Positions 23,893-53,785 of a DNA stretch of 64,000 nucleotides are shown here, piece by piece. The DNA is taken from the NCBI RefSeq assembly GCF_011386835.1, contig NC_088802.1:1550001-1614000 (forward strand), in the 5' to 3' direction. The stretch comes from Chrysemys picta bellii (lineage: Eukaryota). How positions within the stretch are numbered: position 1 is the first letter of the stretch; each line of letters starts with the position of its first letter. The notes beneath the pieces were generated by a model. The model did not search any database and was not told where the DNA came from. It was given only the letters and a program-made list of their open reading frames with translations. A program made the translations under genes and the position numbers.

Positions 23893-26800
23893 TCAGGGCT
23901 GCCCCTCCACGTCCCCGCCCCCCTCCCCGTCAGTGCTCCCCGGGTTCTCTCCCAGCAGGCGGGCGAGCTGGTCCAGGACCTGCTGCAGGGTGCGGGCCAG
24001 GCGCTGGGCGTGGGTCTCACGGCAGCAGTTGAAGGCTGTGATGGCAAAGTTGACGTGGGCGTCCAGCGGGTTGTAGCAGACCCCGTAGCCGTCCGGCACC
24101 TGCGGCCCGTAGATCATCAGGCAGTCGGAGCGCGAAGCCACCTGGCAGGGTGTGGGGAGAGCGGGGTGAGGGGGGCGGACAAGTCCCCTCCCCCTGCCTG
24201 CACACCAGCGTCCACCCAACCTGAACCCCCCACCGCTGATGACCTCCACTGAGGAGGCAGGATAAGAACCCACTATGGCTGCCTGCGAAGAGAGCTCCCC
24301 CCAACACCCCTGGGCAGGGAGAGGGGAGGGAGCAGGAACAGGTGTTAGTTGGGGGGCAGAGGCCCATATCTGCCTAGTGAGCAGCCATCAGTGGATGGCA
24401 ACGCTACAGGGGGTATCTGGTGCGGGGGAGGGTGTAGCTGGGGGGCCATACCTGCTTGGTAAGCAGCAGGTAGCACGTGGTGATGGTGTAGGGGCGCCGT
24501 GGGGCGGGTGAGGGTTAGTTGGGGGGCGCCGTGGGGCAGTACCTGGCCGGTCAGCAGCCGGCAGTGCGTGGCGATGGCGTAGGGGCGCCGTGGGGCGGGT
24601 GAGGGTTAGTTGGGGGGCACCGTGGGGCAGTACCTGGCCGGTCAGCAGCCGGCAGTGCGAGGCGATGGTGTAGGGGCGCCGTGGGGCGGGTGAGGGTTAG
24701 TTGGGGGGCTCCGTGGGGCGGGTGAGGGTTAGTTGGGGGGCGCCGTGGGGCGCCATGGGGCAGTACCTGGCCGGTCAGCAGCCGGCAGTGCGTGGCGATG
24801 GCGTAGGGGCGCCGTGGGGCGGGTGAGGGTTAGTTGGGGGGCGCCGTGGGGCAGTACCTGGCCGGTCAGCAGCCGGCAGTGCGTGGCGATGGCGTAGGGG
24901 CGCCGTGGGGCGGGTGAGGGTTAGTTGGGGGGCGCCGTGGGGCAGTACCTGGCCTGTCAGCAGCCGGCAGTGCGTGGCGATGGTGTAGGGGCGCCGTGGG
25001 GCGGGTGAGGGTTAGTTGGGGGGCTCCGTGGGGCGGGTGAGGGTTAGTTGGGGGGCGCCGTGGGGCGCCGTGGGGCAGTACCTGGCCGGTCAGCAGCCGG
25101 CAGTGCGTGGCGATGGCGTAGGGACGCCGTGGGGCGGGTGAGGGTTAGTTGGGGGGCGCCGTGGGGCAGTACCTGGCCGGTCAGCAGCCGGCAGTGCGTG
25201 GCGATGGCGTAGGGGCGCCGTGGGGCGGGTGAGGGTTAGTTGGGGGGCGCCGGGGGGCAGTACCTGGCCGGTCAGCAGCCGGCAGTGCGTGGCGATGGCG
25301 TAGGGGCGCCGTGGGGCGGGTGAGGGTTAGTTGGGGGGCGCCGTGGGGCAGTACCTGGCCGGTCAGCAGCCGGCAGTGCGTGGCGATGGCGTAGGGGCGC
25401 CGTGGGGCGGGTGAGGGTTAGTTGGGGGGCACCGTGGGGCAGTACCTGGCCGGTCAGCAGCCGGCAGTGCGAGGCGATGGTGTAGGGGCGCCGTGGGGCG
25501 GGTGAGGGTTAGTTGGGGGGCTCCGTGGGGCGGGTGAGGGTTAGTTGGGGGGCGCCGTGGGGCGCCATGGGGCAGTACCTGGCCGGTCAGCAGCCGGCAG
25601 TGCGTGGCGATGGCGTAGGGGCGCCGTGGGGCGGGTGAGGGTTAGTTGGGGGGCGCCGTGGGGCAGTACCTGGCCGGTCAGCAGCCGGCAGTGCGTGGCG
25701 ATGGCGTAGGGGCGCCGTGGGGCGGGTGAGGGTTAGTTGGGGGGCGCCGTGGGGCAGTACCTGGCCTGTCAGCAGCCGGCAGTGCGTGGCGATGGTGTAG
25801 GGGCGCCGTGGGGCGGGTGAGGGTTAGTTGGGGGGCTCCGTGGGGCGGGTGAGGGTTAGTTGGGGGGCGCCGTGGGGCGCCGTGGGGCAGTACCTGGCCG
25901 GTCAGCAGCCGGCAGTGCGTGGCGATGGCGTAGGGGCGCCGTGGGGCGGGTGAGGGTTAGTTGGGGGGCGCCGTGGGGCAGTACCTGGCCTGTCAGCAGC
26001 CGGCAGTGCGTGGCGATGGCGTAGGGGCGCCGTGGGGCGGGTGAGGGTTAGTTGGGGGGCGCCGTGGGGCGCCGTGGGGCAGTACCTGGCCGGTCAGCAG
26101 CCGGCAGTGCGTGGCGATGGTGTAGGGGCGCCGTGGGGCGGGTGAGGGTTAGTTGGGGGGGCGCCGTGGGGCACCGTGGGGCAGTACCTGGCCGGTCAGC
26201 AGCCGGCAGTGCGTGGCGATGGTGTAGGGGCGCCGTGGGGCGGGTGAGGGTTAGTTGGGGGGCGCCGTGGGGCAGTACCTGGCCGGTCAGCAGCCGGCAG
26301 TGCGTGGCGATGGCGTAGGGGCGCCGTGGGGCGGGTGAGGGTTAGTTGGGGGGCGCCGTGGGGCAGTACCTGGCCGGTCAGCAGCCGGCAGTGCGTGGCG
26401 ATGGCGTAGGGGCGCCGTGGGGCGGGTGAGGGTTAGTTGGGGGGCGCCGTGGGGCAGTACCTGGCCGGTCAGCAGCCGGCAGTGCGTGGCGATGGCGTAG
26501 GGGCGCCGTGGGGCGGGTGAGGGTTAGTTGGGGGGCGCCGTGGGGCAGTACCTGGCCGGTCAGCAGTCGGCAGTGCGTGGCGATGGCGTAGGGGCGCCGT
26601 GGGGCGGGTGAGGGTTAGTTGGGGGGCGCCGTGGGACAGTACCTGGCCGGTCAGCAGCCGGCAGTGCGTGGCGATGGCGTAGGGGCGCCGTGGGGCGGGT
26701 GAGGGTTAGTTGGGGGGCGCCGTGGGGCAGTACCTGGCCGGTCAGCAGCCGGCAGTGCGTGGCGATGGTGTAGGGGCGCCGTGGGGCGGGTGAGGGTTAG

Positions 26801-29800
26801 TTGGCGGGCGCCGTGGGGCAGGTGAGGGTTAGTTGGGGGGCGCCGTGGGGCGCCGTGGGCAGTACCTGGCCGGTCAGCAGCCGGCAGTGCGTGGCGATGG
26901 CGTAGGGGCGCCGTGGGGCGGGTGAGGGTTAGTTGGGGGCGCCGTGGGCAGTACCTGGCTGGTCAGCAGCCGGCAGTGCGTGGCGATGGCGTAGGGGCGC
27001 CGTGGGGCGGGTGAGGGTTAGTTGGGGGGCGCCGTGGGGCGCCGTGGGGCAGTACCTGGCCGGTCAACAGCCGGCAGTGCGTGGCGATGGCGTAGGGGCG
27101 CCGTGGGGCGGGTGAGGGTTAGTTGGGGGGCGCCGTGGGGCAGTACCTGGCTGGTCAGCAGCCGGCAGTGCGTGGCGATGGCGTAGGGGCGCCGTGGGGC
27201 GGGTGAGGGTTAGTTGGGGGGCGCCGTGGGGCGCCGTGGGGCAGTACCTGGCCGGTCAACAGCCGGCAGTGCGTGGCGATGGCGTAGGGGCGCCGTGGGG
27301 CGGGTGAGGGGTTAGTTGGGGGGCGCCGTGGGGCAGTACCTGGCCGGTCAGCAGCCGGCAGTGCGTGGGCGATGGCGTAGGCCGTGTCCATGAAGATCCC
27401 GGGCAGCCGCTGCCCGTCCCGATGGCCGCCAGCTTCAGTCCCAGCAGGTGCCGGTCGATGCCCTGCCCGGCCAGCACCTGCGGGGAGAGGGTCAGAGCCC
27501 GGACGCCTGGGTCCCGGCCCTGCACACCGTCCCAGCCCGGACGCCTGGGTCCCAGCCCTGCCCCACCCCCACCCATGTGGAGAGAAGTTCAAAGCCCGGA
27601 TGCCTGGGTCCCAGCCCCGCCCCACCCCTGCCCATGTAGGGAGAAGGTCCCAGCCCGGACGCCTGGGTCCCAGCCCCGCCCCACCCCCTACCCACGTGGG
27701 GAGACGGTCCCAGCCCGGACGCCTGGGTCCCAGCCCAACCCCACCCCTGGCCATGTGGGGAGAGGGTCCCAGCCCGGCGGGGGAGGGGGGGTTGGCTCAC
27801 CTGTTCGGTCCTGGCGCTCTGAGATTCCACCGCCGCCTGCAGCAGGGACAGCGTCTCCGCGTCCTGGGGGCCGGGGGAGCCGGGTCAGAATGGGGGGTGC
27901 TGGGGGGCAGGGGGACGGGGTAAGGGCAGGGCGTGGGGGGGGGTTACCTGGCCGTGGGGCGTGTCCTGGGGGCCGGGGGAGCCGGGTCAGAATGGGGGGT
28001 GCTGGGGGGCAGGGGGACGGGGTAAGGGCAGGGCGTGGGGGGGGGGTTACCTGGCCGTGGGGCGTGTCCTGGGGGCCGGGGGAGCCGGGTCAGAATGGGG
28101 GGTGCTGGGGGGCAGGGGGACGGGGTAAGGGCAGGGCGTGGGGGGGGGGTTACCTGGCCGTGGGGCGTGTCCTGGGGGCCAGGGGAGCCGGGTCAGAATG
28201 GGAGGTGCCGGGGGGCAGGGGGACGGGGTAAGGGCAGGGCGTGTGGGGGGGGTTACCTGGCCGTGGGGCGTGTCCTGGGGGCCGGGGGAGCTGGGTCAGA
28301 ATGGGGGGGTGCCGGGGGGCAGGGGGACGGGGTAAGGGCAGGGCGTGTGGGGGGGGTTACCTGGCCGTGGGGCGTGTCCTGGGGGCCGGGGAGCCGGGTC
28401 AGAATGGGGGGTGCCGGGGGGCAGGGGGACGGGGTAAGGGCAGGGCGTGGGGGGGGGTTACCTGGCCGTGGGGCGCGGGGGGGGTTACCTGGCCGTGGGG
28501 CGTGTCCTGGGGGCCGGGGGAGCCGGGTCAGAATGGGGGGTGCTGGGGGGCAGGGGGACGGGGTAAGGGCAGGGCGTGTGGGGGGGGTTACCTGGCCGTG
28601 GGGCGTGTCCTGGGGGCCGGGGGAGCCGGGTCAGAATGGGGGGGTGCCGGGGGGCAGGGGGACGGGGTAAGGGCAGGGCGTGGGGGGGGGGTTACCTGGC
28701 CGTGGGGCGTGTCCTGGGGGCCGGGGGAGCCGGGTCAGAATGGGGGGTGCCGGGGGGCAGGGGGACGGGGTAAGGGCAGGGCGTGTGGGGGGGGTTACCT
28801 GGCCGTGGGGCGTATCCATGGCCCGGGCCAGGCGCAGCACCGGGGGGGGCCGCGGGGCGCACGGCGTCCGTCCGGCCCAGGTGGAAGCGGCGAAGTGACA
28901 CCACCTCGCTGGTGGCGCAGAGCGAGCCGTGGGTCCTGGGGGGAGACGGGGGTCAGCCCCACACCAAACCCCCCAGTGCCTCACCTCCACCCGCCCCACA
29001 CAGACCCCCCCCACTGCCCCACCCCCAGCCTGGTCCCCCAGGGCTGCCCCCGCCCATACCCGCCAGGGCCCCCCACCTGTAGTAGGCCAGCTGCAGCGCC
29101 ACCTGGAAGAGGGAGTCGGGGCGCAGCCCCCAGCGCTTGGGGAGCCCCTGCCCGAACCCCCGGTAGGTGAAACAGCTGATGTCCAGGTCTGTGATCAGGC
29201 TGGGGGGAGAGAGGTGTTAGATGGGGGGCTGGGCCCTCCGCCCCCCAATAGCGCCCCCTCTTCCCCTCTCCCCACCCCTCCATCCCATCCCAACCTCCTG
29301 CTCCCCAATAGCCCCCCCAACCCTCTGCCCTCCCAACAGCCCCCCCCCTCTCCCCACCCCTCCACTCCATCCTAACCTCCTGCTCCCCAATAGCCCCCCC
29401 AACCCTCTGCCCCCCCAACAGCCACCCTCTTCTCCTCTCCCCACCCCTCCACCCCATCCCAACCTCCTGCTCCCCAATAGCCCCCCCAACCCTCTGCCCT
29501 CCCAACAGCCCCCCTCCTCTCCTCTCCCCACCCCTCCACCCCAATCTCCTGCTCCCCAATAGCCCCCCACCCCTCCCCAACTTTCCCCTCCCCCTTCACC
29601 CTCCCTCCCATGCCCCCTGCTGCCCCCCCGGCTCTCACATGTCCAGGTTCTGTTTGGCTCGCTCGATGTCCCACTGGATCTCGGGGGTGATGTAGAAGTA
29701 CAGCTTTGGGGGCAGGGGCAGGGGCGTCATGGGGGCGCGTGCCGTGTCGGGGTCCTTGCTGCCGGAGACCCCCGGGTCAGATGGGAGGATCCCCCCCAAA

Positions 29801-32800
29801 TCACCATGCTGGGGGCACATCACTGCACCCCAAAAACAGCCTCCCCAGGTAGCATATTCTGCCCTTTCCCCCGCCACAACCTCCCTCCCCTTCCCAAGGC
29901 AGAAGGTTCCACCCCTTTCCCTACCCCCCAGGCAGGAAGTCCCGCCCCTTTTCCCATTCCCAAAACAGGAAGTTCTGCCCCTCTCCCCCACCAGCCTGCT
30001 CCAGACCCACAGAGGTGGTACAGGGGATCCCTCACCCCAATTCCACTCCCCCACACATGCTTCCCATTTTGGGGTCCCTCCACTACAGGACAAAAACAGG
30101 GGATCTGGGGCTGCTGCTCCCTGAGAATGGACCTCCAATTACCCTCCCACCAGTTCAGGGGCACCTCAACACAGGTGTAATGTGGGGTACAGGGAATGCC
30201 ATGCCATAGGGAAGGGTGAACCCCACACCCCATCTTGGGGAGCCCCAACATTGGCACATTTGGGGTACTGCCTTGTGGGGAGATAAAACCCCCAAATCTC
30301 CCCCTTCTCTCCATTATAAGGGGGTCCCTAATTCAGAAGAATATTGGGGGGCTGCGTTATAGGGAGATGTGACCCCCAAATCCTCTGTTTCCATTGGGTC
30401 CCCCCAGGCTGGCTCTGTGGGATTGATCAGGTGGTCAAAGGTCTGGGGGCACCCTGAATGTCCTAGTTTAGGGCTTACCAGTAATCGAGGACATGGTCGA
30501 TGATGGTTGCTATGGGGGCCCCGTCGGCCACGGCCTGTTCATACAGCACCCCACAAACGCCGTCCTCCCCCAAGATGAACTGGGGGCAGGGAACGAGAGA
30601 GCAGGTACACAAGACAGGAAATCCCGCCTATCCCTTCCACCCTAATCCCAAAACAGGAAGTCCCGCCCCTTTTCTTGCCACAAAACAGGAAGTCCTGCCT
30701 CCCTACACACAGTCCCACCCCTGCAGTCCAAACTAGGAAATCCTACCTCCCTATCTACATTTTCTTCACCGCCGGAAAATTAGGAAGTCCCGCCCCCACC
30801 CAACACTCCAAGACAGGAAGTCCCGCCCCCTAGCTCCCAAAGCAGGAAGTCCCGCCCCCACCTCACCTGCAGGGTCTTGTCGAACCAGCGGTTGCCGCTG
30901 TTGGAGTAGCTGCCGCCCCCGTGCAGCATCTGGGCGGCGACGCGGCTGGGGTAGCGCTCGTCCGACACCTTCAGCACCGGGGCGTCGAGGCAGACGGTGA
31001 AGAGGCTGTGCTGGATGCACCGGGCCGACTCCCGGTTTAGCCGGTCTGGAGGCGGGGTCACCGGACGGGTCAGCACCACCCCCTCACACCAAGCAGGATT
31101 CGAACCCAGAACTTCCCTGCTTTGGGGTCCCACCCTTGTTACACCCCATTCACTGCTGTCCTCCAGGCATCGGGGTCCCCCTTTAGCCCCTTCCAAAGCA
31201 GAAGTCCCGCCTCCTTTCCCCCTCCCCCATTACATCTTGAGATTACCTGGACCCCCAGCCAGGTCCCCCAGGCCAGGGGGCCCCCCCGTACCTCTCACAA
31301 CGGTGCTGCAGACCTGGCCCAGCTTTTGGGGTCCCTGGGCCCCCCCGTACCTCTCATGAGGGTGCTGTAGGCCTGGCCCCAGGTGTGCCGGTGATCCCCC
31401 GTCAGCACCCCCAGCGGCTCCTTGTCCGTCTTCCACGACAGCCCCCGGACGCGCTGCAGCTGCAGGTGCAACTGGTCCACGGTGAGGGGGGTCCCGTCGC
31501 TGTTGTACACCTCCACCTGGAAAAACTGGGGGGGCGGGAGTCAGGGTCAGCCTCCGCAGGGCCCCCGGAATCTGCCCAGTGACCCCCCCAGCCGCCAGGG
31601 ACCTCCCGGAGCTCCCGAGGACCCCCCCGTCCCCACACAGACACCCCGAAACACCCCATTTCCCCCCACATACAGCCCAGAACCCCTCAGGAGTCAGCCA
31701 GCCCCACTCCCTACATGAACACCCCCCAGGTCCCCCCACCCCGGGAATCCCAGACACGGGGCTGTTCTGGGGGAGTCAGAGGGGGAGGTGCAGAGGGGCC
31801 CATGCCTGGGGGTGACCTGGACAAAGGGGGGCTTGGGGGTATCACATGAGGGGGTTCTGGGGGGCACATTTCCCACGGGGTCCCAGGGCAGGGCCGGGTC
31901 TGGAGTCCCGGGGGGGAGGGGGTCCCGCGGCACGGCCGGGTCTGGGGGTTCTGGAGACCCCAGGGCAGGGATAGCTCTGGGGGGCTGGGGTCCCAGGGGG
32001 GAGGGGGTCCCGCGGCACGGCCGGGTCTGGGGTCCCGGGGGGGTAGTCCCACGGCACGGCCGGGTCTGGGGTCCCGGGGGGGGGGAGGGGGTCCCGCAGC
32101 ACGGCCGGGTCTGGGGGTTCTGGAGACCCCAGGGCAGGGACAGCTCTGGGGGGCCGGGGCCCCGGGGGTACCTGGAAGTTGCGGACGACGGTGATGAAGG
32201 TGGGGGCCCGGCGCCCCGGGACAGGCAGCAGGAGCCCGTCATGCTTGGGGCCGGGCAGGCGGCAGGAGGCGAAGAGGCTGCTGTACTGGGCCATGCACTG
32301 GGGGTGCCCCCCCCGGTACTCCACCAGCAGCGCCTGCCTGGGGGGGGGGGGGGGAGTGAGAGACATGGGGCAGAGCGACCCCCCCCAGTCCCGTCCCACC
32401 ACTCCCCCACCCCCAGGGGCCCCCCCAGCATCATCCCTCCCCACCCCTCCGGGTCCTGTATAGCCCCTCCCCTGCCCCTTCCCCAACCCCCGATATCTAG
32501 TCCCCCCAATATAACCCTCCTTCCCCCATCCCTCCCCCAATACTGGGGGGGGGTGTCAGGCACTTACTGATCAATCTTAGCCTTGAAATCCAGCACCCCC
32601 GCGATGAGCTTCGCCGCAAACCTGGGGGTGGGGACGGGGGACGTCACAGATCCGCCGGTGCCCCTCACTCCCGACCCACAGCCCCCACTAGCCCAGCCCA
32701 GCCCAGCCCCCCCCAGCTCTGCCGGTGCCCCTCACTCCCGACCCGCAGCCCCCGCTAGCCCAGCCCAGCCCCCCCCAGCTCTGCTGGTGCCCCACACTCC

Positions 32801-34935
32801 TGACCCGCAGGCCCCGCTGGCCCAGCCCAGCCCCGCCCCAGCTCTGCCGGTGCCCCTCACTCCCGACCCGCAGCCCCCGCTAGCCCAGCCCTGCCCCCCC
32901 CAGCTCTGCCGGTGCCCCTCACTCCCGACCCGCAGCCCCCGCTAGCCCAGCCCTGCCCCCCCCAGCTCTGCCAGTGCCCCTCACTCCCCAACCCGCAGCC
33001 CCTGCCAGCCCAGCCCTGCCCCCCCAGCTCTGCCGGTGCCCCTCACTCCCGACCCGCAGCCCCTGCTAGCCCAGCCCTGCCAGTGCCCCCCACTCCTGAC
33101 CTGCAGCACCCCGCCAGCCCCCCCATCCCCCCAGCTCTGCCGGTGCCCCTCACTCCCGACCCACAGCCCCTGCTAGCCCAGCCCTGGGCTCCCGCCATCC
33201 CCCCCGCCAATACCCACCGGAGCTGCCCCCTCCAGTCGCTGTAGTCCTGTTTGGGGAGCACGACGGCCGGGCTGGAGTGGACGGCGAGGGGTAAGCGGCT
33301 CTCCAGATACGCGCTCTGCACCCACCAATCCGAGAGCTGGGGTGGGGGGGCGGGGAGGACAGACCAGGGTTAGAATCGGGGGGCGGGGGTCATGGGGCCT
33401 TTGACCCGAGCTCTCCCCTGCAGCTTCCCCCCCCCGCACCCCAGGCTGAGACCTGGCACAACTTCATTGCACTGATGGGCATGAGCAGAGTCCCCAGCAG
33501 GGGGTGCTGTCCCGGGGCAGCCATCCCACTCCCATCTCCTGTCCCGGATGCCAGGGTCCCCACCATCGCCCCCGTGTTCCCCCCCAAAAGCTCCAGGGAC
33601 CCTCACAGGACTCCTGGGGTCCCCCACCTTTCACCCCTCCCCCAAACTCCTGGGTTCTGCCTGCTCCCAGCCCTGCCCAGGACACCTGGGTCCCCCCCCC
33701 CCCCCCCCCGCAGCTCCCTAACCCCCGGACACCTGGGTCCCCCAAGCTCTACCCAGTTCTCCATGCGGGCGGCTCTGCGCTCCAGCTGGGCCTGCAGCCG
33801 TTCCCCCTCTCCGCCGGGCGCCCCGAACTCCTGCACCAGTTCCCGGGTTTCCTCCAGCTCCTCGGGCGTGACCAGCACCTCCAGCGAGCGCAGGTACCGC
33901 TCCAGCGTCTGGGCCAGCGGGGGCACGGGCTGCCGGGGCAGCGGGAAGGACGAGGCCAGACATCGCGACGGGGGCCCCTGCAGGGACGGGAACGGCTCGA
34001 CTGCACCAAGGGCCACGGGCCCACCTGCCGCCCTGGGCACAGGTGGCTGCCCCCAAAGCGGGAACTGCAACGGGAAAGTCACCAATGCACCACCCAGAGC
34101 CTGGCATCACGCAGCGTCCGGCGCCGGCCTACACAACGCCCCAGGAGCAGCCGGCGTTGAAATGCACCAAGAGCAACCTCGGTTCTCGGCGTCCGGCGCT
34201 GGAAATGCAACGGCCTGCATGCAACGTGGCACCTGCAACCCGCAGACCCAGGGGGGCCCGTCTCCGGCCACGTGCTGGCCAAGCGGCGGGCGCTGCCACC
34301 CTCCACCTTAACCGCGGGTGGCAAAAGCAGACATGCACCAACGGCCCCCCTTGCAAGGTGCAGCCAGAGCGGTCACCGCAATTGCGAACTTGCAATTGTA
34401 ACCGTCACAAATGGGTGTGTGTGTGTGTGGGGGGGGGGGTGTCCCACTTCTAAAGCGGCCAATGCAACAGCCCCCCCCCCGGACCCAAGTTGCAGGCGTC
34501 AAAGGTGCCCCAGGTGGCGGCTTTGCCGATGCAACCGTCAGGGCCCCTCGCTGCAGTTTGCGGAGGTGCCAAAGGGCCGCACGCGCCTCCTGCCGCAAAT
34601 GCACCATCCTGCGCGCTTGCAAAACCGCCCCTGCGCGTCCCCCCCCCCGGAGCGAGGCACGTGCAGCCGGATTCCCCCCGCCCCCGCTTGCAAAGGGGGA
34701 AACGCGCCCCCCCCCCCGGGCTGCAAGTTGCAAAGTTGTAACCCGGCCGGGTGGGTCTGCCCCCCCCCGGGGGGCTTTGCACGGCCGCGCGGCCCCTTGG
34801 CAAGGCCCCCCCCGCACTTCTGCGGCCCAGCAGCTGTTTGCAACGGGGCCCCCCCCGCCCCCCACTCACCGGGGCGCGTGACCCCGGCGCTCGCCTGCAG
34901 CCCCAGGGGGGCAGGAGGAACCTCCAGCGCCCCAT
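23893..34935 (-). CDS. Carnitine O-acetyltransferase-like protein (CRAT paralog) with substituted catalytic His; 14 coding exons
   Basis: Exons 34935-34870, 33977-33753, 33336-33218, 32621-32568, 32337-32172, 31525-31351, 31045-30867, 30579-30479, 29758-29639, 29199-29077, 28935-28799, 27863-27801, 27477-27340 and 24141-23893. Motifs LPRQPVPPL, LSDWW, GNRWFDKTLQ, ALQLAYY, FHLGRTD, DRHLLGLK, PDGYGVCYNP. AATAAA (minus) at 23583-23578. Homopolymer indels in exons 11 and 13. Confidence 0.9.
24440..27340 (-). repeat. 91-bp tandem array (about 30 copies) duplicating the CRAT-like exon 13 3' end and splice donor
   Basis: Sense unit gtactgccccacggcgccccccaactaaccctcacccgccccacggcgcccctacgccatcgccacgcactgccggctgctgaccggccag; variants of about 101 and 133 bp. 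Confidence 0.95.
27864..28798 (-). repeat. About 103-bp tandem array: 9 intron copies separated by 8 18-nt exon-like segments in CRAT-like intron 11
   Basis: Each unit reads gtaacc...ctgac...ggcccccag|GACACGCCCCACGGCCAG|. Segments start (plus coordinates) at 27948, 28051, 28154, 28257, 28361, 28489, 28592 and 28696. Confidence 0.92.
32650..33185. repeat. Minisatellite family A in CRAT-like intron 3
   Basis: Same core repeated. Confidence 0.88.
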
Positions 34936-41648: not shown

Positions 41649-42499
41649 TTCTTGCAGGACCCGTAACACTCATGGCTTTGACAGGGTCCTGCCCGTCACC
41701 GTGACCAGCCGCATCGCTCGGGCGATGGCACGAAATGAACGTGTGACCCGGGGCGGGAGGGCGCTGGGCGAGCAATTCGGCGGCCTGGCTCGTGTCACGG
41801 GAGATCCCGGTGTGGGAGGGGGTGTGTGATCCCCCCAGTCCTGGGCCCTTCGTAGCCCTGGGGCTGGCCCAGCAATTCCTTGGCCTGCAGGGCAGAGGGG
41901 CTGGAATGAGGGGGACGCCACCCCCATCCCGCCTGGGGGTCCGGCTTGGTTCAGTGGCTGTCAGCCCCCAGCGGTGCCCACCCAGCCCAGCCCCCTGCCC
42001 CAGGCCGGCGCCGCAGGACTCGGCCCGGGGCCAGTTCCGGCTTTTCCCCGGGTTTCCCCGTCTCCTTCCCAGCCTCTCCAGCCGCCTCTTGACAAGCCTT
42101 CCCAGCGCCCAGTGTTTGCCCTGCAAACGGGCTCGTGTGCCAGCCGGCTCCTGGAGAGCGGGCCGGGTGCCAGGACGCCTGGGTTCTCTCTCCTCAGCTG
42201 GGGGGGTGGGGGAGGGAGATGTGAGCCTGGACTCCTGGGTTCTCTCCCAGGCTCCGGGAGGGGAGGGGATGTGGGAGCCCGGACTCCTGGGTTCTCTGCC
42301 CAGCCCCAGGACGGCGGGGGAGGGGGAATCTGGGAGGCCGGACTCCTGGGTTCTCTCCCCGGCTCCGGGAGGGGGAGCTGGGAGCCCGGACTCCTGGGTT
42401 CTCTGCCCAGCCCCGGGACGGGAGGGAAGGGGGAGCTGGGAGCCCGGGACTCCTGGGTTCTCGGCCCGGCCCCGTGGGGGGGGGGCGGGGATGGAATGC

Positions 42500-42633
42500 T
42501 CATACATCCGTTGCTAGGGAAGCTGCGCGGTTGCCGGGGCCGGGTTCCGGAACTGACGCGGGGGCGGGGGGGCCGCTCGCCCGGGACGGAAGTAAACAAG
42601 GCACCGGCCGGATCGCGGGGGGGCCCCGCTCAG
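42500..42633 (+). promoter_or_regulatory. PPT2 CpG promoter and non-coding first exon
   Basis: CpG-rich, ETS CGGAAGT at about 42586, forkhead GTAAACAA at about 42591, donor CAG|gtgaga at 42633/42634. Acceptor before the coding exon ends at 43172. Confidence 0.55.
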
Positions 42634-43204
42634 GTGAGACCCGCCCCCCCGGCAGTGGGGGAGGGGCAGCCGCGCTGCATTCCGGGGGAGCGGACCCAGG
42701 AGTCCTGGCCCCTGAAGGGGGGGGACTTAAACCCCCCCCCCGGGGTGCGAGGGAGTTTGGGGGTCCTCCCCGGAGCCCCCCGGGTGCATTACGGGGGGGA
42801 CGGACCCGGCTGGCTGCAGGGGACAGAGGCGGGGGGGGGGCTAGAAACTTTGCAGTGGGGGGTGACCCTCAAAGGGGCCCCTTCCCCAGAGCGCGGGGGG
42901 GGGGCGGAGAAAGGGGGTGAAGTGATCTGCCCTGCACCCCCATTGGGGACCCGGACTCCTGGGTCCCACCCCAGCGCTGGGGGTAGGGGGGAGCTGGGAG
43001 CCCGGACTCCTGGGTTCCACCCCGGCGCTGGGAGGGGGGTGGGGGCTGGTGGGTTAGAGCAGGGGGGGACTGGGAGGCCGGACCCCTGGGTTCTCTCCTC
43101 CCTGCTTGCAAAACGGGGGTGCGGTGGAGGGATCTGGGGGTGAACCTCAACATGTGTCTCTCTCCTGCCCAGACCCCCCTGCGCCGCGGTTCGATTCCAG
43201 GACG

Positions 43205-46200
43205 ATGGGCCGACCCCAGAGGAACTGGGGGGTGCTGGCCCCCCTCTGCCTCCTCCTCCTCTTCCTCCTCACCCTCGGTGCCTCCTACAAGCCGGTCGTG
43301 GTCGTTCACGGCCTTTTCGACAGCCCTTCGGTCTTCAGCCACCTACTGCACTTCATCAACCAGGTCAGCCCGGATGCCTGGGTCCCCCCCCCCCCCCCCC
43401 AGGACTCCTGGGTTCTCTCCCGGCTCTGGGAGCAGAGTGGGGGTTGATGGTCAGAGTGGGGGGGCTGAGAGCCTGGACTCCTGGGTTCTCTCCCCAGTTC
43501 TGGGAGGGAAGTGGGGGCTGGGGGGTTAGAGCGGGGGGGGGCTGAGAGCCCGGACTCCTGGGTTCTCTCCTCGGCTCTGGGAGAGGAGTGGGGGCTGGTG
43601 GGTTAGAGGCGGGGGGCTGGGAGCCAGGACTCCTGGGTTCTCTCCCCAGCTCTGGGAGGGAAGTGGGGGCTGGTGGGTTAGAGCAGGGGGGGCTGGGAGC
43701 CTGGACTCCTGGTTCTATCCCAGCTCCGGGAGGGAAGTGGGGGCTGGTGGTTAGAGCGGGGGGGCTGGGAGCCCGGACTCCTGGGTTCTCTCCCAGCTGT
43801 GGGCGGGAGGGAGGCAGATGTTGTACTAACTGGAGCAGAGGGTGGATTTCACTGGCCCCAGCCCAGCTGACTCAGGGCCCTGGAGCTAAAACAGCAGGTA
43901 GCAAAACAACCCGGAGACACCCATGGGGTGACAGGGAACGTGGGCAGTGCGGTGTAGTAGTTAGACCAGATAGTCAGGACTCCTGGGTTCTCTCCTCTGG
44001 GAGGGGAGTGGGGGCTGGTGGGTTAGAGCAGGGGTGCTGGGAGCCAGGACTCCTGGGTTTTCTCCCAGCTCCACTCTGGTGGCTTAGAGCGGGGTGGGGC
44101 TGGGACGCCTGGGTTCCATTCTCCACGCACTGTGTGTTGTACTTAAAGGAGGAACCAGCCATCACCGCAGCCCCCGGCCTCAGGGTAACCCAGCCCCAGC
44201 GCTGAGCGAAGTTATTGTGTACCGCACAGGATCTCTTCAGGGGGAATAAGGCAAACGCCACATTTATTAGTAATACACGTATTCATTAACACTGTATTAT
44301 ATGCATATAATATATTACACACACACACACACACAAACACACTCCGTCTTGTTGTTACCAATTAGTTGCTCCCCTTAACTTCACTGGCCAGGTGAGTTAG
44401 ATGGGGGAGGGGGTGGAGCCGGGCTTCTGCCGATCTGGATCGATGCTCCCATGTTGACAAGACGAGACCCGGGGTCCTCTGCAAGACACCTCACTTTTAT
44501 AGCCGCTTCTCTCTCCTGCAGATCTGTACCAGCTCCAAACTCTGTGTCTGTGTGGTTGAGGCTTGACACAAAGTTTCTACATGAGGCTTTGATACAAAGT
44601 CCCATGAAAACAGAGGTCACACGTGGGTAGACCCACTACAAGGTTATAGGAAGAGGCACAATGTAAAGTCATATGAAAATTATCAGAGATTGATCTACGT
44701 GTGTGACCTCATGCACGTCCCTCATCGCTCCCTGCCTCAGTTTCCTTCCTGTCACACAGACCAGGCCTGGCAGGCGGTTTGAATGTGTCTGAATGCAAAG
44801 TTTGTTTTAAACTCTGAAGATAAGAAATGCCAAGTGAAATCAGTTCTCTCCAATCCCCACCCACGCAGGAATCAACAGAGCTGGGGAAGCCCAGGGCTGG
44901 GCTGGCAGGGGCTGCGAGTCGGGAGTGAGGGGCACCGGCCGGGCTGGGGGCTGCGGGTCGGGAGTGAGGGGCACCGGCCGGGCTGGGGGCTGCGGGTCGG
45001 GAATGAGGGGCACCGGCCGGGCTGGGGGTTGTGGGTCGGGAGTGAGGGGCACCAGCGGAGCAGGGGGGAGCTGGGCTCTCACCCGTCTCTCCCTGGCACA
45101 GACCCACCCTGGCACCAACGTGACGGTCGTGGATCTCTTCGACCACAGCCAGAGCCTGAAGCCACTGTGGGTGCAGGTGGAGGGTTTCCGACAGGCCATT
45201 TCGCCCATCATGCAGAACGCGGCCGACGGGGTGCATCTCATCTGCTATTCGCAGGGTACGGCCGGCCCCAGGGGCCCTGGTACCACCCGGGCTGGGAGAG
45301 CAGGGCTGCGGGTCGGGAGTGAGGGGCACCGGGGGGCTGGGGGGACCCAGGGGGCTGCGGGTCGGGAGTGAGGGGCACCGGGCTCGAGGGGTACGGGGGG
45401 GAGCGGTTTTGGTGCCTCCCCCTGCTGCTCGCTGTGGGAATTGCACTCGGCCCCCTGAGGCGACCTGGACCCAGGCGATCGGGGGAGGTTTTGTTTGTCT
45501 CCTCGCAGTGGTGGTCGGGGGATGTGCCAGGTGTTGCGGATTGTGGGGGAGTTAGGGCCCTGCACCCCTCTTCCCGAGATTCACTGCGACTCTCAGCCAG
45601 CCAGTAAAGCAGAAGGTTTATTCAAGGACAGGAACACAGTCTCAAGCAGAGCGTGTAGGTACGACCAGACCCCCCTCAATTAGGTCCCTCTGGGAGGTTC
45701 AGGGAGCTTAGACCCCAGCTTGGGGTTCCCTGCGTTGCACCACCCAGCCCCAACCGAAACTAAACTCCCAGCCCCTCCCGCTGCTCCTCTCCTTTGTTCA
45801 GTCTCCCGGGCAGAAGGTGTTAATTCTCCCCACCCCCGTTCCTGGCTCAGGTTACAGCTCAGGTAGCTCCCTTCAAGGGAAGTCCCACATCCCCACTGCA
45901 ACCCCCCTGCAACATTCCCAGGTCAAATCTGCCCTGCTCCCTGCTCCGTCACATCTCTCCCCCCTTCGAGACTGAACTGAGCGGGGTCACTCTGACCAGT
46001 GACCTGGGGAAGTTCAGGGCTCCCTCTCCGGGACAACGCGTCCGCTATCAGGTTGTCACGTCCCTTCACATGGACCACGTCCATGTCATAATCCTGCAGG
46101 AGCAGGCTCCATCTCAGGAGCTTGGCGTTGGCTCCTTTCATCTGGTGCAGCCAGGTCAGGGGAGAGTGGTCGGTGTGCACGGTGAAGTGACGCCCAAAGA

Positions 46201-52200: not shown

Positions 52201-53785
52201 ACAGCAGCAACTTCCTCGCCCTGCTCAACAGTGAAAGGGTTAATCCCAACACCACAGGTAAGGGAGGTGCCCCTCACTCCCGACCCGCAGCTCCCCCCCC
52301 CACTCCGCCGGCGCCCCTCACTCCCGACCCACAGACCCCCGCTCCGCCGGTGCCCCTCACTCCCGACCCGCAGCCCCCCCGCTCCGCTGGTGCCCCTCAC
52401 TCCCAACCCGCAGCCCCCTGTTTCTCTAGGCTGGTCCTTGCAGGGTGGGGGGTTTACAGCTGGGGTCCCCCTGCCCCCCATAACTCCCGTCCCCTGTGCC
52501 CCCAGCCTGGAAGAGGAACCTCTTGCGGATCCGGAAGCTGGTTCTGGTCGGGGGTCCGGACGACGGGGTCATCACGCCCTGGCAGTCCAGGTGAATGCGC
52601 CGGCCGGAGATCGGGGCCGGGGATGATTTATGGGGGCCATAGAAAAGGGCACTGGAAGTTGGGGGTGTGAAGTTGGGGGTCTGTGGGGGCTGTCCTGGGA
52701 GGTGGGAGGGTTCAGAGCTGGGGCTGTGGTGGGAGGGGCGGGGTGCAGAGGGGGGCAGGGTCATGGGGGGTTCAGATGGGGGAGGGGCAGGGTTGTGGGG
52801 GAGGGGAGGGGTCGTGGGGATATGATGAAGTTTGGGGGCTGACGCAGGATTCAGGGGGCTGGAAGAAGCTGCAGTGAAGGGAACCCCCAGTGGGGAAGAT
52901 TTGGGGCGCCGGGGAGGGCGCCAGAAATTGGGGGCTGGCCCTGGGCTGGGTCTGCAGCTCCCTGCGATCTGGGCGCCCCCCAATGAACGACCCCCCAGTA
53001 ACCCCCCCGAACCTCCCAAACAGCCTCTTCGCTTTCTACAACCTCAACGAGACGGTGACGGACATGGAGCAGCAGCTGGTGAGCGGAGCTGGAGGGCCTG
53101 GGAGGGGAGTGGGGGCTGGTGGGTTAGAGCAGGGGGGGCCGGGAGCCAGGACTCCTGGGTTCTCTCCCCAGCTCTGGGAGGGGAGTGGGGGCTGGTGGGT
53201 TAGAGCAGGGGGGGCTGGGAGCCAGGACTCCTGGGTTCTCTCCCCGGCTCTGGGAGGGGAGTGGGGGCTGGTGGGTTAGAGCAGGGGGGGCTGGGAGCCA
53301 GGACTCCTGGGTTCTCTCCCCAGCTCTGGGAGGGGAGTGGGGGCTGGTGGGTTAGAGCAGGGGGAGCTGGGAGCCAGGACTCCTGGGTTCCCTCCCCAGC
53401 TCTGGGAGGGGAGTGGGGGCTGGTGGGTTAGAGCAGGGGGGCTGGGACCCAGGACTCCTGGGTTCCCTCCCCAGCTCTGGGAGGGGAGTGGGGGTTAGTG
53501 GTCAGAGCAGGGGGGGCTGGAAGCCAGGACTCCTGGGTTCTCCTGTCTCTGGCCCTGATGCCCAGCGGGACGGGGGGGGGGGGGGCTCTATCTGTATTAC
53601 ACTGTGTGACTCTCGCCTGGCTCTGATCCCCCCCCCCCCAGGTGTACCTGCAGGACAGCTTTGGGCTGAAGACGCTGGACGCCCGCGGTGCCATCGCCCG
53701 GTGCCTGGTGCCCGGGGTGCCACACACGGCCTGGCACTCGAACCGCACCGTCTACGAGACCTGCCTGGCCCCCTGGCTCTCCTAG
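43205..53785 (+). CDS. PPT2: Lysosomal palmitoyl-protein thioesterase 2
   Basis: Exons 43205-43363, 45102-45255, 51655-51750, 51971-52078, 52174-52257, 52506-52590, 53024-53078 and 53642-53785 join in frame. Signal peptide, [13 protein letters not shown], catalytic [29 protein letters not shown] at 55913-55918. Confidence 0.96.
44135..44699 (-). mobile_element. Solo LTR of the same family as 36363-40136, internally deleted, in PPT2 intron 1
   Basis: Reverse-complement match to both LTR ends; 4-bp TSD TGTG at 44131-44134 and 44700-44703; carries a 71-bp insert at 44149-44219. Confidence 0.85.
45532..51586 (-). mobile_element. Full-length Gmr1-type Ty3/Gypsy LTR retrotransposon in PPT2 intron 2 (antisense)
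   Basis: 422-bp LTRs at 45532-45953 and 51165-51586 with TG...CA ends; 5-bp TSD CCAGG at 45527-45531 and 51587-51591; tRNA-Leu-like PBS TGGTGGCAGCGACGGGATC at 51162-51144; PPT at 45966-45954. Confidence 0.96.
45923..50839 (-). CDS. Gag-Pol polyprotein, 1638 aa: capsid/SCAN-like, CCHC knuckle, protease, integrase, RT, RNase H
   Basis: Uninterrupted ORF with [29 protein letters not shown] integrase (GHQGIRRT...CDPC; DIVGP; TDQGSNF; NGLVER), YIDD at 46825-46814, and DASDTG/TDH. Integrase lies before RT. Confidence 0.96.
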   Translation of the reverse strand: MASRKMYAKRLKSDLVELCKQRQLRIGRLTKEQLIAQLEAEDRANELIPVSQGSSLANAAQAPVSVPAGSGQPAAEGFPRPLLPMPRGRVGRSPANTEGAVIPPASRGSPRRSPPASRGSSRQRSASGERNWLEWEKELKLRELEDREQQRQHEERQRQHEREEKERQHQHEREENERQRQENERQRQENERQHQRELELARLRGSEPPAAVSDGGPRTARSFDKCIMAPYKEGEDMDDFLEAFETACELHRVDPADRLRVLTPLLDPKSVALYRQLGEAEKGDYELFKRALLREFGLTPEMYRERFRGQDKTPEISYLQLAVRMERYASKWAGGAQTKEDLIKLLVLEQLYERCPSDLRLWLVDRKPENPRHAGQLADEFVKSRSGGGREEPQRNRPAAMQRESHPGTSQRGNMGNPLPRGRPSIRDNRPARGDPRDLSCYYCGRRGHVRAQCPKLKDRLSRPNPHRVNLVEAQTDEGQASHARGAGSLSTAQEREGPPASFSGGPDAPDSKFSVYRVGAGLSLRSECLVPLEVDGKKVYGYWDTGAEVTLARPEVVAPDRVVPNTFLTLTGVGGTTFKVPVARVHLKWGAKEGPKDVGVHHHLPTEVLMGGDLEDWPSSPQTALVVTRSQSRRGALRPDLGKDVPPEAPNPSRVGREHPRTGRGVAGASDPADEREQVPIPSSAAEFQAELQKDPSLRKLRGLADLSVGQTMRRGCKERFLWEKGFLYREWAPPGEVESWGIRRQLVVPQKFRHKLLYLAHDIPLAGHQGIRRTRQRLLQNFYWPGVFTNVRQYCRSCDPCQRVGKARDKGKAALRPLPIIEEPFQKVAMDIVGPLSKTTRSGKKYILVVVDFATRYPEAVPLSSIEADTVADALLTIFSRVGFPKEVLTDQGSNFMSALLRCLWERCGVRHNWASAYHPQSNGLVERFNGTLKMMLKTFMNQHPQDWDKYLPHLLFAYREVPQESTGFSPFELLYGRRVRGPLDLMRDEWEGKATPDGESVVEYVLTFRERLAELMGLARENLARAQRKQKVWYDRTARARAFATGDQVMVLIPVRKNKLQAAWEGPFKVVKQLNEVNYVVELSNRAHHHRVYHVNMMKPYYDRGNMVLAVCGQWEGQGDDPLVDLFPGTRVGFPLEAIPLSDRLTPAQRAEIGGVLHLYQQLFSNQPGRTNLTVHRVQTGSHPPIKCSPFRATGKTAQDLEREVNDMLALGVIQPSSSPWASPVVLVPKKDGSIRFCVDYRKLNAITVADAYPMPRPDELLDKLGGARYLTTMDLTKGYWQVPLDADARLKSAFVTPLGLYEFLTLPFGLKGAPATFQRLVDQLLRGMESFAVAYIDDICVFSQTWEDHISQVRQVLDRLQKAGLTVKPEKCKVGMAEVSYLGHRVGSGCLKPEPAKVEVIRDWPAPQTKKQVQAFIGMAGYYRRFVPHFSAIAAPITELCKKGKPDKVVWTEECQEALRALKEALVSGPVLANPDFDKPFMVFTDASDTGLGAVLMQEDEKGERHPIVYLSKKLLPREQNYAAIEKECLAMVWALKKLEPYLFGRHFTVHTDHSPLTWLHQMKGANAKLLRWSLLLQDYDMDVVHVKGRDNLIADALSRRGSPELPQVTGQSDPAQFSLEGGRDVTEQGAGQI
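53090..53540. repeat. Minisatellite family B in the last PPT2 intron
   Basis: About 65-bp unit, 6-7 copies. Confidence 0.88.

Follow-up and report, generated by a model that had tools for sequence, protein, structure and literature searches.

A stretch of 64,000 nucleotides from Chrysemys picta bellii (contig NC_088802.1, positions 1,550,001 to 1,614,000; hereafter the window) encodes a CRAT-like protein in which a glutamine stands in the place of the catalytic histidine. Is this substitution an error, a sign of gene decay, or the mark of a protein that has been maintained in a role other than canonical acyl transfer? The original prediction favored the last of these, a conserved pseudoenzyme. 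We addressed the question by examining the structure and neighborhood of the gene, its phyletic distribution, the fate of its active-site residues and the selection acting on it.

Gene structure and family affiliation

The gene lies on the minus strand between positions 34935 and 23893 in 14 exons, and all 13 of its introns have GT-AG boundaries, as expected from the canonical splice sites that had been reported for it. Exon 1 (34870..34935) supplies the start codon and an Arg-rich N-terminus devoid of acidic residues, which is a putative mitochondrial presequence. It is followed by exons 2 (33753..34064), 3 (33218..33336) and 4 (32568..32621), the last of which comprises 18 codons without a Pfam match, and by exons 5 (32172..32337), 6 (31351..31525) and 7 (30867..31045). 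Exon 8 (30479..30579) codes for the active-site loop. Between it and the terminal exon lie exons 9 (29639..29758), 10 (29077..29199), 11 (28799..28935), 12 (27801..27863) and 13 (27340..27477), and exon 14 (23893..24141) contains the stop codon. In a scan of 10 exon-bearing segments, which left out exons 9, 12 and 13, nine matched the Pfam Carn_acyltransf profile (PF00755) collinearly over profile positions 1-574; the orthologs of the gene carry the same domain.

The closest relative of solved structure is CRAT (765 bits to human CRAT), with lower scores for ChAT (431 bits) and CROT (211 bits) and with CPT2 also behind; structural comparison with Foldseek ranks these relatives in the same order. 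Canonical CRAT (PDB: 1NM8, 1NDB, 2H3P) shares with the turtle protein its Pfam family, 55-56% identity in an alignment that is gapless over 590 residues, and the two-domain fold, the AF2 model superposing on the CRAT structures with a TM-score of 0.95-0.96 and an rmsd of 1.8 Å. Unlike canonical CRAT, the gene resides at a separate locus between PPT2 and PRRT1.

Phyletic distribution, gene neighborhood and origin

Phylogenetic analysis shows that the window gene is the turtle member of a vertebrate clade (clade B) whose annotated names are cratb for fish and "carnitine O-acetyltransferase-like" for sauropsids. These models, from fish to birds, are orthologs that share the clade, the 14-exon structure and the neighboring genes. 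The gnathostome members of clade B group with a support of 100, and together with cyclostome sequences with a support of 97; the canonical CRATs, from sharks to mammals, form a distinct clade (support 95). Clade B is the sister group of the canonical vertebrate CRATs and falls within the invertebrate CRAT outgroups. The cyclostome sequences are placed on the B side, and the split precedes the gnathostome radiation. Clade B is certainly older than the split between rays and bony fish, and probably older than the lamprey and hagfish split. The stems leading to the birds and the frogs within the tree have branch lengths of 1.72 and 0.82, respectively. Both a canonical CRAT and a clade B copy coexist, for instance, in Mauremys, Gopherus, Sceloporus, Latimeria, gar and Rhinoraja. 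No mammalian member of clade B was retrieved, and the clade appears to be absent from mammals. The description of the gene as a CRAT paralog holds, but it is not a local or lineage-specific copy, being the vertebrate-wide cratb/CRAT-like gene.

Conserved gene order corroborates this picture. In Mauremys, Grus and Athene the order is PPT2, the CRAT-like gene and a gene coding for a CD225 domain (PRRT1), with a bZIP gene, perhaps ATF6B, lying beyond the CD225 gene in Grus. In the window this order is anchored by the last exon of a PPT2-like palmitoyl-protein thioesterase gene (53636..53785, plus strand), which is transcribed divergently. This exon was the exception in a tblastx comparison of a bird locus with the window that was otherwise dominated by GC-rich low-complexity matches. 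Pfam scans of the window ORFs between 15.8 and 19.7 kb did not detect the CD225 domain of PRRT1, and its placement as a neighbor follows from the collinearity of the window with the Mauremys locus. PPT2, PRRT1 and ATF6B belong to MHC class III, and human CRAT is located in the 9q34 paralogon. Taken together, the tree and the gene order indicate that the duplication giving rise to clade B probably dates to the base of the vertebrates or earlier, and the gene is a candidate ohnologue of CRAT, derived from vertebrate whole-genome duplication, in the MHC paralogon.

Replacement of the catalytic histidine

The translation of exon 8, FILGEDGVCGVLYEQAVADGAPIATIIDHVLDY, can be aligned with the mouse and human CRAT sequences without a gap, a Gln then standing opposite the catalytic His of the YEH motif, which bears out the YEH to YEQ change that had drawn attention to this locus. 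This His343 is the general base of CRAT (PMC11852590). The CAG codon concerned (30535..30537, minus strand) lies in the context CTG TAT GAA CAG GCC GTG and hence, as had been noted, outside any homopolymer. Whereas His is found at position 343 in 39 of 39 canonical CRAT and outgroup sequences, the sequences of clade B and the cyclostomes show Gln in 31 cases, Pro in five, Arg in four and His in three. In a wider tabulation about 90 of approximately 125 clade members carry Gln, including rays, bichir, gar, most teleosts, coelacanth, lungfish, amphibians, squamates, crocodilians and all turtles examined. The codon is CAG in turtles, identically so in the Mauremys ortholog, and CAA in squamates and teleosts. 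That the Gln codon might result from faulty sequencing or from a mutation private to the sequenced individual, a concern that orthologs with His would have sustained, is refuted by the Gln shared among these orthologs from rays to turtles and by the identical codon of Mauremys, as well as by its position outside a homopolymer; we regard the probability of either as negligible.

The site is not rigidly Gln within clade B. Birds possess Pro, lampreys and hagfish Arg, and two percomorphs Ala and Pro, respectively; cypriniforms and a mormyrid possess His, which was regained twice. We also considered as a substitute base a His conserved in clade B at CRAT position 357 (motif "DH"), and rejected it because it lies 14 residues further along the next helix and would be situated off the active site.

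Other active-site residues and targeting signals

Canonical CRATs share 102 invariant positions, of which 72 show the same residue in at least 90% of non-avian clade B; clade-wide replacement is limited to four, namely L38Q, H343Q, Y452C and S554G. Two of these concern further residues of the catalytic site: in CRAT, Tyr452 is the ligand of the carnitine carboxylate and Ser554 contributes to stabilization of the transition state. The loss of His343 had thus been recognized correctly, and the concomitant loss of Tyr452 and Ser554 goes beyond what was originally claimed. In the window protein position 452 (exon 11) is Ser and position 554 Gly, exon 13 coding for L-T-G in place of S552-T553-S554, while Tyr and Ser are invariant at these sites in canonical CRATs. 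Cys452 and Gly554 are the ancestral states of clade B. The commonest residue at 452 is Cys, which occurs in five of six birds and, outside the birds, in 25 of 37 clade B sequences; elsewhere the position is occupied by Thr or Ala in squamates, Ser in turtles (Tyr in Carettochelys) and Gly in the alligator. Residues that are invariant specifically in clade B include W132, R237, Y382, F412 and G554.

Among the invariant positions that persist are the CoA lysines K419 and K423 together with T465, R518 and M564, all of them mostly retained in clade B. Turtles, the alligator and birds have lost some or all of the CoA-binding lysines: in exon 10, which covers the CoA 3'-phosphate lysine positions, K419 is replaced by Gln in turtles and K423 is retained. 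R518 is retained in exon 13.

The clade B proteins also lack the peroxisomal PTS1 signal -SKL/-AKL, the turtle protein ending in -EGQP, in contrast to the canonical vertebrate CRATs, of which 31 among the 35 listed carry it and four teleost copies do not. Judged from N-terminal composition only, the Arg-rich N-terminus probably mediates mitochondrial import.

Selection and expression

Estimates of dN/dS are 0.26 for turtles (0.18 for the mature domain), 0.06 for squamates, 0.12 for teleosts and 0.15 for birds, and neutrality is rejected in all four lineages with p ranging from 1e-9 to 1e-84. In comparisons of matched species the ratio of divergence in clade B to that in canonical CRAT is mostly 0.75-1.7. 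The strength of purifying selection on clade B is comparable to that on the true CRAT.

Transcription of the orthologs is evident from intron-free contigs, which encode them at full length in a squamate and two teleosts and as a 499-residue ORF in a bird. These spliced contigs come from orthologs only, and a contig search with the Chrysemys protein model found no encoding contig on record. For the turtle itself the evidence is indirect and consists of the proportion of sampled words present in RNA or probable-RNA runs: RNA-labelled runs contain 0.10-0.24 of the sampled words of the window stretch, where words from exons only would amount to approximately 0.29 of the stretch. The values of dN/dS well below 1, the spliced mRNAs and the Gln of the orthologs together support the predicted maintained pseudoenzyme, with inactivity as an inferred component.

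Frame disruptions in the Chrysemys copy

As assembled, the spliced sequence of the window gene amounts to 2002 nucleotides, which is not divisible by three. The frame is broken by three single-base differences from the Mauremys ortholog in homopolymers: an extra C in exon 11, with C8 at 28842-28849 against C7 in Mauremys, and in exon 13 a missing G at 27418-27420 (GGG against GGGG) and an extra C at 27367-27369 (CCC against CC). No other stop or frame defect was found, in agreement with the earlier reading of the gene as free of in-frame stops apart from the homopolymer indels. In exon 1, a seeming +1/-1 pair at 34887 and 34880/81 arises from misalignment of the variable presequence and does not affect the frame.

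Taken at face value, these indels would make the Chrysemys copy a recently inactivated pseudogene, whose product would be garbled from around codon 498 and cut short in exon 14. They are indeed present in the assembled sequence, all four NCBI protein models of Chrysemys picta bellii share the out-of-frame stretch, and the terminal branch of the window gene (0.039) exceeds those of other turtles. However, all three are single-base changes in G or C runs within a region of 63-74% GC, all splice sites of the gene are intact, and the sequence downstream of the first indel still displays a dN/dS of 0.29 (p = 0.005). Furthermore, the reading frame is intact in all other turtles, the emydids Terrapene and Malaclemys among them, and the hidden frame of the window copy yields a protein identical to that of Malaclemys at 369 of 371 positions. 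On account of this near-identity the three indels are most likely assembly errors and not real decay, and recent inactivation appears very unlikely. A search with the exon-13 region for short-read ORFs of the same species returned a single fragment, from Pangshura.

Functional implications

The reading that we consider probable is that clade B represents an ancient sister copy of CRAT that has turned into a non-catalytic binder, sensor or regulator, with the indels of the window copy being assembly errors. Early in its history His343 was replaced by Gln, Tyr452 by Cys (Ser in the turtle of the window) and Ser554 by Gly, and the PTS1 was lost. The two-domain CRAT fold and the acyl pocket have been retained, as have most of the residues that are otherwise invariant, with Arg518, Thr465 and Met564 among them and, in the majority of lineages, the CoA 3'-phosphate lysines. 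The Arg-rich N-terminus probably directs the protein to mitochondria, and CoA or a short acyl-CoA, and perhaps carnitine, would still be bound in the old active-site tunnel. Given the roles of His343, Tyr452 and Ser554, we infer that acyltransferase activity has been lost; canonical His-dependent transfer would no longer be possible, and a role as non-catalytic binder, sensor or regulator would follow. As the CoA lysines are partly or wholly lost in turtles, the alligator and birds, ligand binding may fail in sauropsids.

Alternatively, the clade could still be enzymatic, the three substitutions marking a changed reaction by His-independent chemistry or on a new substrate, for instance acyl-CoA hydrolysis, auto-acylation via Cys452 or transfer with the help of another base. 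Purifying selection matching in strength that on the true enzyme would fit such a scenario, as would the tunnel residues K419, K423, T465, R518 and M564 kept in most lineages, the prevalence of Cys452 and the two regains of His343. The cyclostomes are also pertinent, in that no canonical His-bearing CRAT was retrieved from them and all their retrieved sequences have Arg343; if they truly lack a His-bearing CRAT, these Arg343 proteins may still be enzymes. Against this, we know of no member of the carnitine/choline acyltransferase superfamily that works without the catalytic His, and Cys452 is not conserved in squamates, turtles or the alligator. Ser554 is lost as well, and with it stabilization of the transition-state oxyanion, and in birds dN/dS is low even though the CoA lysines are gone. 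We therefore deem an altered enzyme unlikely. A more specific proposal of this kind, in which the former active site of the clade took on a new function that does not depend on His, either as an acyl-CoA-reactive protein using Cys452 or as a transferase or hydrolase with another acceptor, and in which the cyclostome Arg343 form may be the sole protein of CRAT type, is quite unlikely; if true, it would mean that the fold of the carnitine acyltransferases can function without its "universal" catalytic histidine.

The preferred reading, a non-catalytic binder or sensor, has counterparts among known proteins. CPT1C, the brain paralog of carnitine palmitoyltransferase 1, is an ER membrane protein of the same family; it retains the catalytic His and to our knowledge is found in mammals only, unlike clade B, which has lost the His and appears to be missing from mammals. 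The literature describes CPT1C as a pseudoenzyme that serves to sense malonyl-CoA (PMC5934389, PMC6927751, PMC7659714). A near-inactive member of the family can hence serve as a metabolite sensor, and the role proposed for clade B would parallel it. The E3-binding protein (PDHX) of the pyruvate dehydrogenase complex, of the wider His-dependent acyltransferase fold, has lost its catalytic His and persists as a structural subunit; it belongs to a different family without detectable sequence relationship and provides an analogy for retention only.

Databases and transcriptome papers treat cratb as an ordinary CRAT. A study on tilapia places it in the peroxisome pathway (PMC11463132), and a zebrafish peroxisome inventory mentions of Cratb only that it lacks a PTS1 (PMC8919083). 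Our literature search on cratb, CRAT-like proteins, pseudoenzymes and the phylogeny of the family turned up no paper that mentions the absence of the histidine or of the other catalytic residues. The cypriniforms examined carry His343 and the zebrafish belongs to the same order, so that the main fish model probably hides this feature.

Conclusions

These findings bear on annotation: in the genomes of fish, amphibians, reptiles and birds the gene carries the name of CRAT and is assigned to pathways accordingly, and in fish transcriptomics it serves as a lipid or peroxisome marker. For experimental work the clade is attractive in having no retrieved mammalian member and an MHC class III setting, and the cypriniform His permits a comparison of zebrafish with medaka. 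The catalytic His has been held to be universal in the carnitine/choline acyltransferases, and here an entire clade of paralogs has replaced it together with two other residues of the catalytic site. Clade B thus offers a natural and testable case of the conversion of an acyl-CoA-handling enzyme to another role.

Phyletic distribution and origin of the CRAT-like gene

Exon 8 of the CRAT-like gene (30479-30579, minus strand) translates as FILGEDGVCGVLYEQAVADGAPIATIIDHVLDY, and in a phmmer search against the PDB all 33 residues align without gaps on mouse and human carnitine acetyltransferase. In both the exon and the full-length alignment its Gln stands opposite the His of the YEH motif, His343 in human CRAT, which bears out the original prediction that this residue is replaced by Gln (CAG, 30537-30535, minus strand). 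The context, CTG TAT GAA CAG GCC GTG, also upholds the claim that the codon lies outside any homopolymer.

Queried with exon 7, a set of 1.84 billion representative proteins yielded relatives that likewise lack His at 343, named 'carnitine O-acetyltransferase b' (Salmo, hagfish) or 'carnitine O-acetyltransferase-like' (birds). Whether orthologues share the Gln was among the checks originally proposed; among the 120 proteins listed from a full-length search they do so from rays to turtles, with Gln343 in turtles, the alligator, squamates, a caecilian, frogs, coelacanth, lungfish, bichir, paddlefish, gar, bowfin, most teleosts and three rays. Birds have Pro, hagfish Arg, four cypriniforms and a mormyrid His, and one percomorph each Ala and Pro. 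Turtles encode Gln343 by CAG, squamates and teleosts by CAA; in birds the codon is CCG or CCA. The His-bearing proteins of the cypriniforms (P0228, P0233, P0244, P0253) and the mormyrid (P0216) represent two independent regains of His343 within Gln-bearing teleosts. As zebrafish is a cypriniform, its Cratb probably masks the defining feature of the clade.

A second search added canonical CRATs (sharks to mammals, turtles included) and lamprey sequences. A maximum likelihood tree of 82 sequences, rooted with invertebrate CRATs, resolves canonical CRAT as a clade (support 95) and the CRAT-like sequences of gnathostomes as another (clade B, support 100), with the lamprey and hagfish sequences attached to the latter (support 97). 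Both copies occur together in, among others, Mauremys, Gopherus, Dermochelys, Sceloporus, Pogona, Rhinatrema, Latimeria, gar, bowfin, Rhinoraja and Accipiter; no mammalian member of the CRAT-like clade was found, though mammalian CRATs were among the sequences retrieved. All four cyclostome CRAT-type proteins retrieved (P0151, P0334, P0332 and P0333, from hagfish and lamprey) carry Arg343 and group with the CRAT-like clade, and no His-bearing cyclostome CRAT is present among the 120 best matches.

In Mauremys, Grus and Athene the CRAT-like gene lies between a PPT2-type palmitoyl-protein thioesterase gene, divergently transcribed from it, and a PRRT1-type CD225-domain gene, with a bZIP gene beyond these neighbours in Grus. 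Collinearity of the window with Mauremys, together with a weak Pfam match of the last exon (53636-53785), places a PPT2-like palmitoyl-protein thioesterase gene at 42300-53800 (plus strand), divergent from the CRAT-like gene. We take human PPT2, PRRT1 and ATF6B to be adjacent MHC class III genes, and human CRAT to lie in 9q34, a region presumably paralogous to MHC class III. Taken with the tree, these positions would fit a proposed origin of the CRAT-like copy in the early vertebrate genome duplications and its later loss in mammals.

Gene structure and integrity

The gene model was built by threading the Mauremys mutica orthologue (P0194) on its own locus, yielding 14 exons, each of which was then aligned to the window. 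The window gene runs from 34935 to 23893 on the minus strand in 14 exons, with the same internal exon lengths as Mauremys and GT-AG at all 13 introns, in agreement with the canonical splice sites originally reported. Pfam PF00755 is matched by 9 of 10 stop-free exon-bearing segments, collinearly over profile positions 1-574. As assembled, the spliced sequence is 2002 nt long and, aligned to Mauremys, shows three single-base differences: an extra C in exon 11 (28842-28849, C8 versus C7), a missing G in exon 13 (27418-27420, GGG versus GGGG) and an extra C in exon 13 (27367-27369, CCC versus CC). The raw reading therefore loses the frame beyond about codon 498, regains it for 17 codons, loses it again and meets an early stop in exon 14.

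The window is 99-100% identical per exon to the Chrysemys picta bellii models, and all four of these read the same out-of-frame stretch. These public models (P0209, P0312-P0314) read through the homopolymer indels; in them about 60-70 out-of-frame Pro/Gly/Ala-rich residues replace the conserved exon 11-13 peptide. The frame is intact in all other turtles compared, namely Malaclemys, Terrapene, Mauremys, Gopherus, Dermochelys, Lepidochelys, Eretmochelys, Emydura, Pelusios and Carettochelys; the Caretta model has a short deviating stretch in exon 11 and then returns to the common frame. Once the three indels are set aside, with X standing for the missing G, 369 of 371 residues of the window protein are identical to Malaclemys. 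The GC content of the indel region is 63-74%, and homopolymer error there is the most likely cause of the indels, judging from sequence comparison.

Two introns contain tandem arrays that repeat exon ends. In intron 13 (24458-27381) a 91-bp unit is repeated about 30 times, starting inside exon 13, and each unit contains the last 14 codons of that exon (YAIATHCRLLTGQV) with the GT donor; the corresponding array of Mauremys (L001:19220-23599) has about 50 units, and the array is thus common to different turtle families. In intron 11 (27861-28817) about nine 103-bp units, 97% identical, carry the 3'-terminal part of exon 11 (..DTPHGQ) along with the donor; one extra copy is seen in Mauremys.

Selection and expression

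Clade B is a conserved sister copy of CRAT under selection. The original prediction had proposed looking for a dN/dS below 1, and Nei-Gojobori estimates (p against neutrality) are 0.06-0.26 across turtles, squamates, teleosts and birds, taking the all-codon turtle figure: window versus Mauremys, 0.26 over all codons (p 1e-9), 0.18 in the mature domain (p 9e-11) and 0.29 past the first indel (p 0.005); a squamate mRNA versus Anolis, 0.06 (p 1e-84); two teleost mRNAs, 0.12 (p 2.5e-45); Grus versus Athene, 0.15 (p 9e-30). Between the window and Mauremys, non-coding DNA shows about 80-87% identity, the exons being more conserved. In matched species pairs clade B diverged 0.75-1.7 times as fast as canonical CRAT; the ratio rises to 4.9 times on the branches to birds, and to 2.8 times both on those to frogs and for turtles versus squamates. 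The bird orthologues (P0158, P0166, P0181, P0190; loci L006, L007) have a very long stem branch (1.72), Pro343 and neither CoA-phosphate lysine, with crown-bird dN/dS still 0.15.

The clade is transcribed as spliced mRNA in lineages other than this turtle: among intron-free contigs of sequencing runs, L002 (a squamate), L003 and L004 (two teleosts) encode the whole protein, and L008 (a bird) a 499-residue ORF of it. In Chrysemys the evidence is indirect: RNA-labelled runs contain 0.10-0.24 of the words sampled from a 1301-bp stretch, about 0.29 of whose words are exon-only, and 91-100% of the exon 14 words are present in fourteen small runs that may be RNA. In fish, cratb is reported to be a regulated transcript (PMC11463132).

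Active site and predicted function

Residue numbers were carried over from human CRAT through the gapless full-length alignment. All canonical vertebrate CRATs listed have L38, Y107, H343, E347, K423, Y452, S454, T465, R518, T553, S554, M564 and F566; K419 and S552 are present in all except one Carassius copy, and 31 of 35 end in -SKL or -AKL. This peroxisomal signal is lost in the CRAT-like clade. Twelve canonical CRATs, from tunicate to fish, share 102 invariant positions; non-avian clade B keeps 72 of these in at least 90% of sequences, and only L38Q, H343Q, Y452C and S554G are replaced throughout, the window turtle having Ser at 452. The clade is without CRAT's general base and without two more residues used in catalysis or carnitine binding. 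K419, K423, T465, R518 and M564 are mostly kept, with further sauropsid erosion in turtles (K419Q, E347D) and the alligator (R518G); in birds both lysines are gone, and CoA binding is unlikely to be the selected trait there. Cyclostome sequences combine R343 with Ser or Thr at 452 and Asn, Lys or Ser at 554, and C452 and G554 persist in the His-bearing proteins of the cypriniforms and the mormyrid. The clade's own invariant residues include W132, R237, Y382, F412, C362 and C594. The CRAT fold and most tunnel residues are retained: the Mauremys protein as modelled by AF2 (pLDDT 81.5, disordered over residues 1-54) superimposes on CRAT crystal structures with a TM-score of 0.95-0.96 and an rmsd of 1.8 A. 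An independent paralogue in Drosophila grimshawi (P0306, 'carnitine O-acetyltransferase') has lost the same residue set in parallel (Leu343, Gln452, Ala554).

With these residues replaced, His-dependent acyl transfer would be beyond the protein's ability. It would bind CoA or acyl-CoA, and perhaps carnitine, without turnover, and act thereby as a sensor, buffer or regulator. It is probably mitochondrial, given an Arg-rich N-terminus whose first acidic residue comes only at about position 45. The main rival explanation is that the clade has acquired a changed chemistry, for which speak the strong constraint on clade B, its widespread Cys452, the double regain of His343 and the fact that the matches include no canonical CRAT from a cyclostome. 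The gene itself is already annotated; in searches of the open-access literature it was met as an ordinary CRAT or as a protein without PTS1, never as one lacking catalytic residues, though an earlier report may exist elsewhere. CPT1C provides a precedent for such a role inside the carnitine acyltransferase family (PMC5934389, PMC6927751, PMC7659714), and we class the clade as a probable pseudoenzyme branch of this family.
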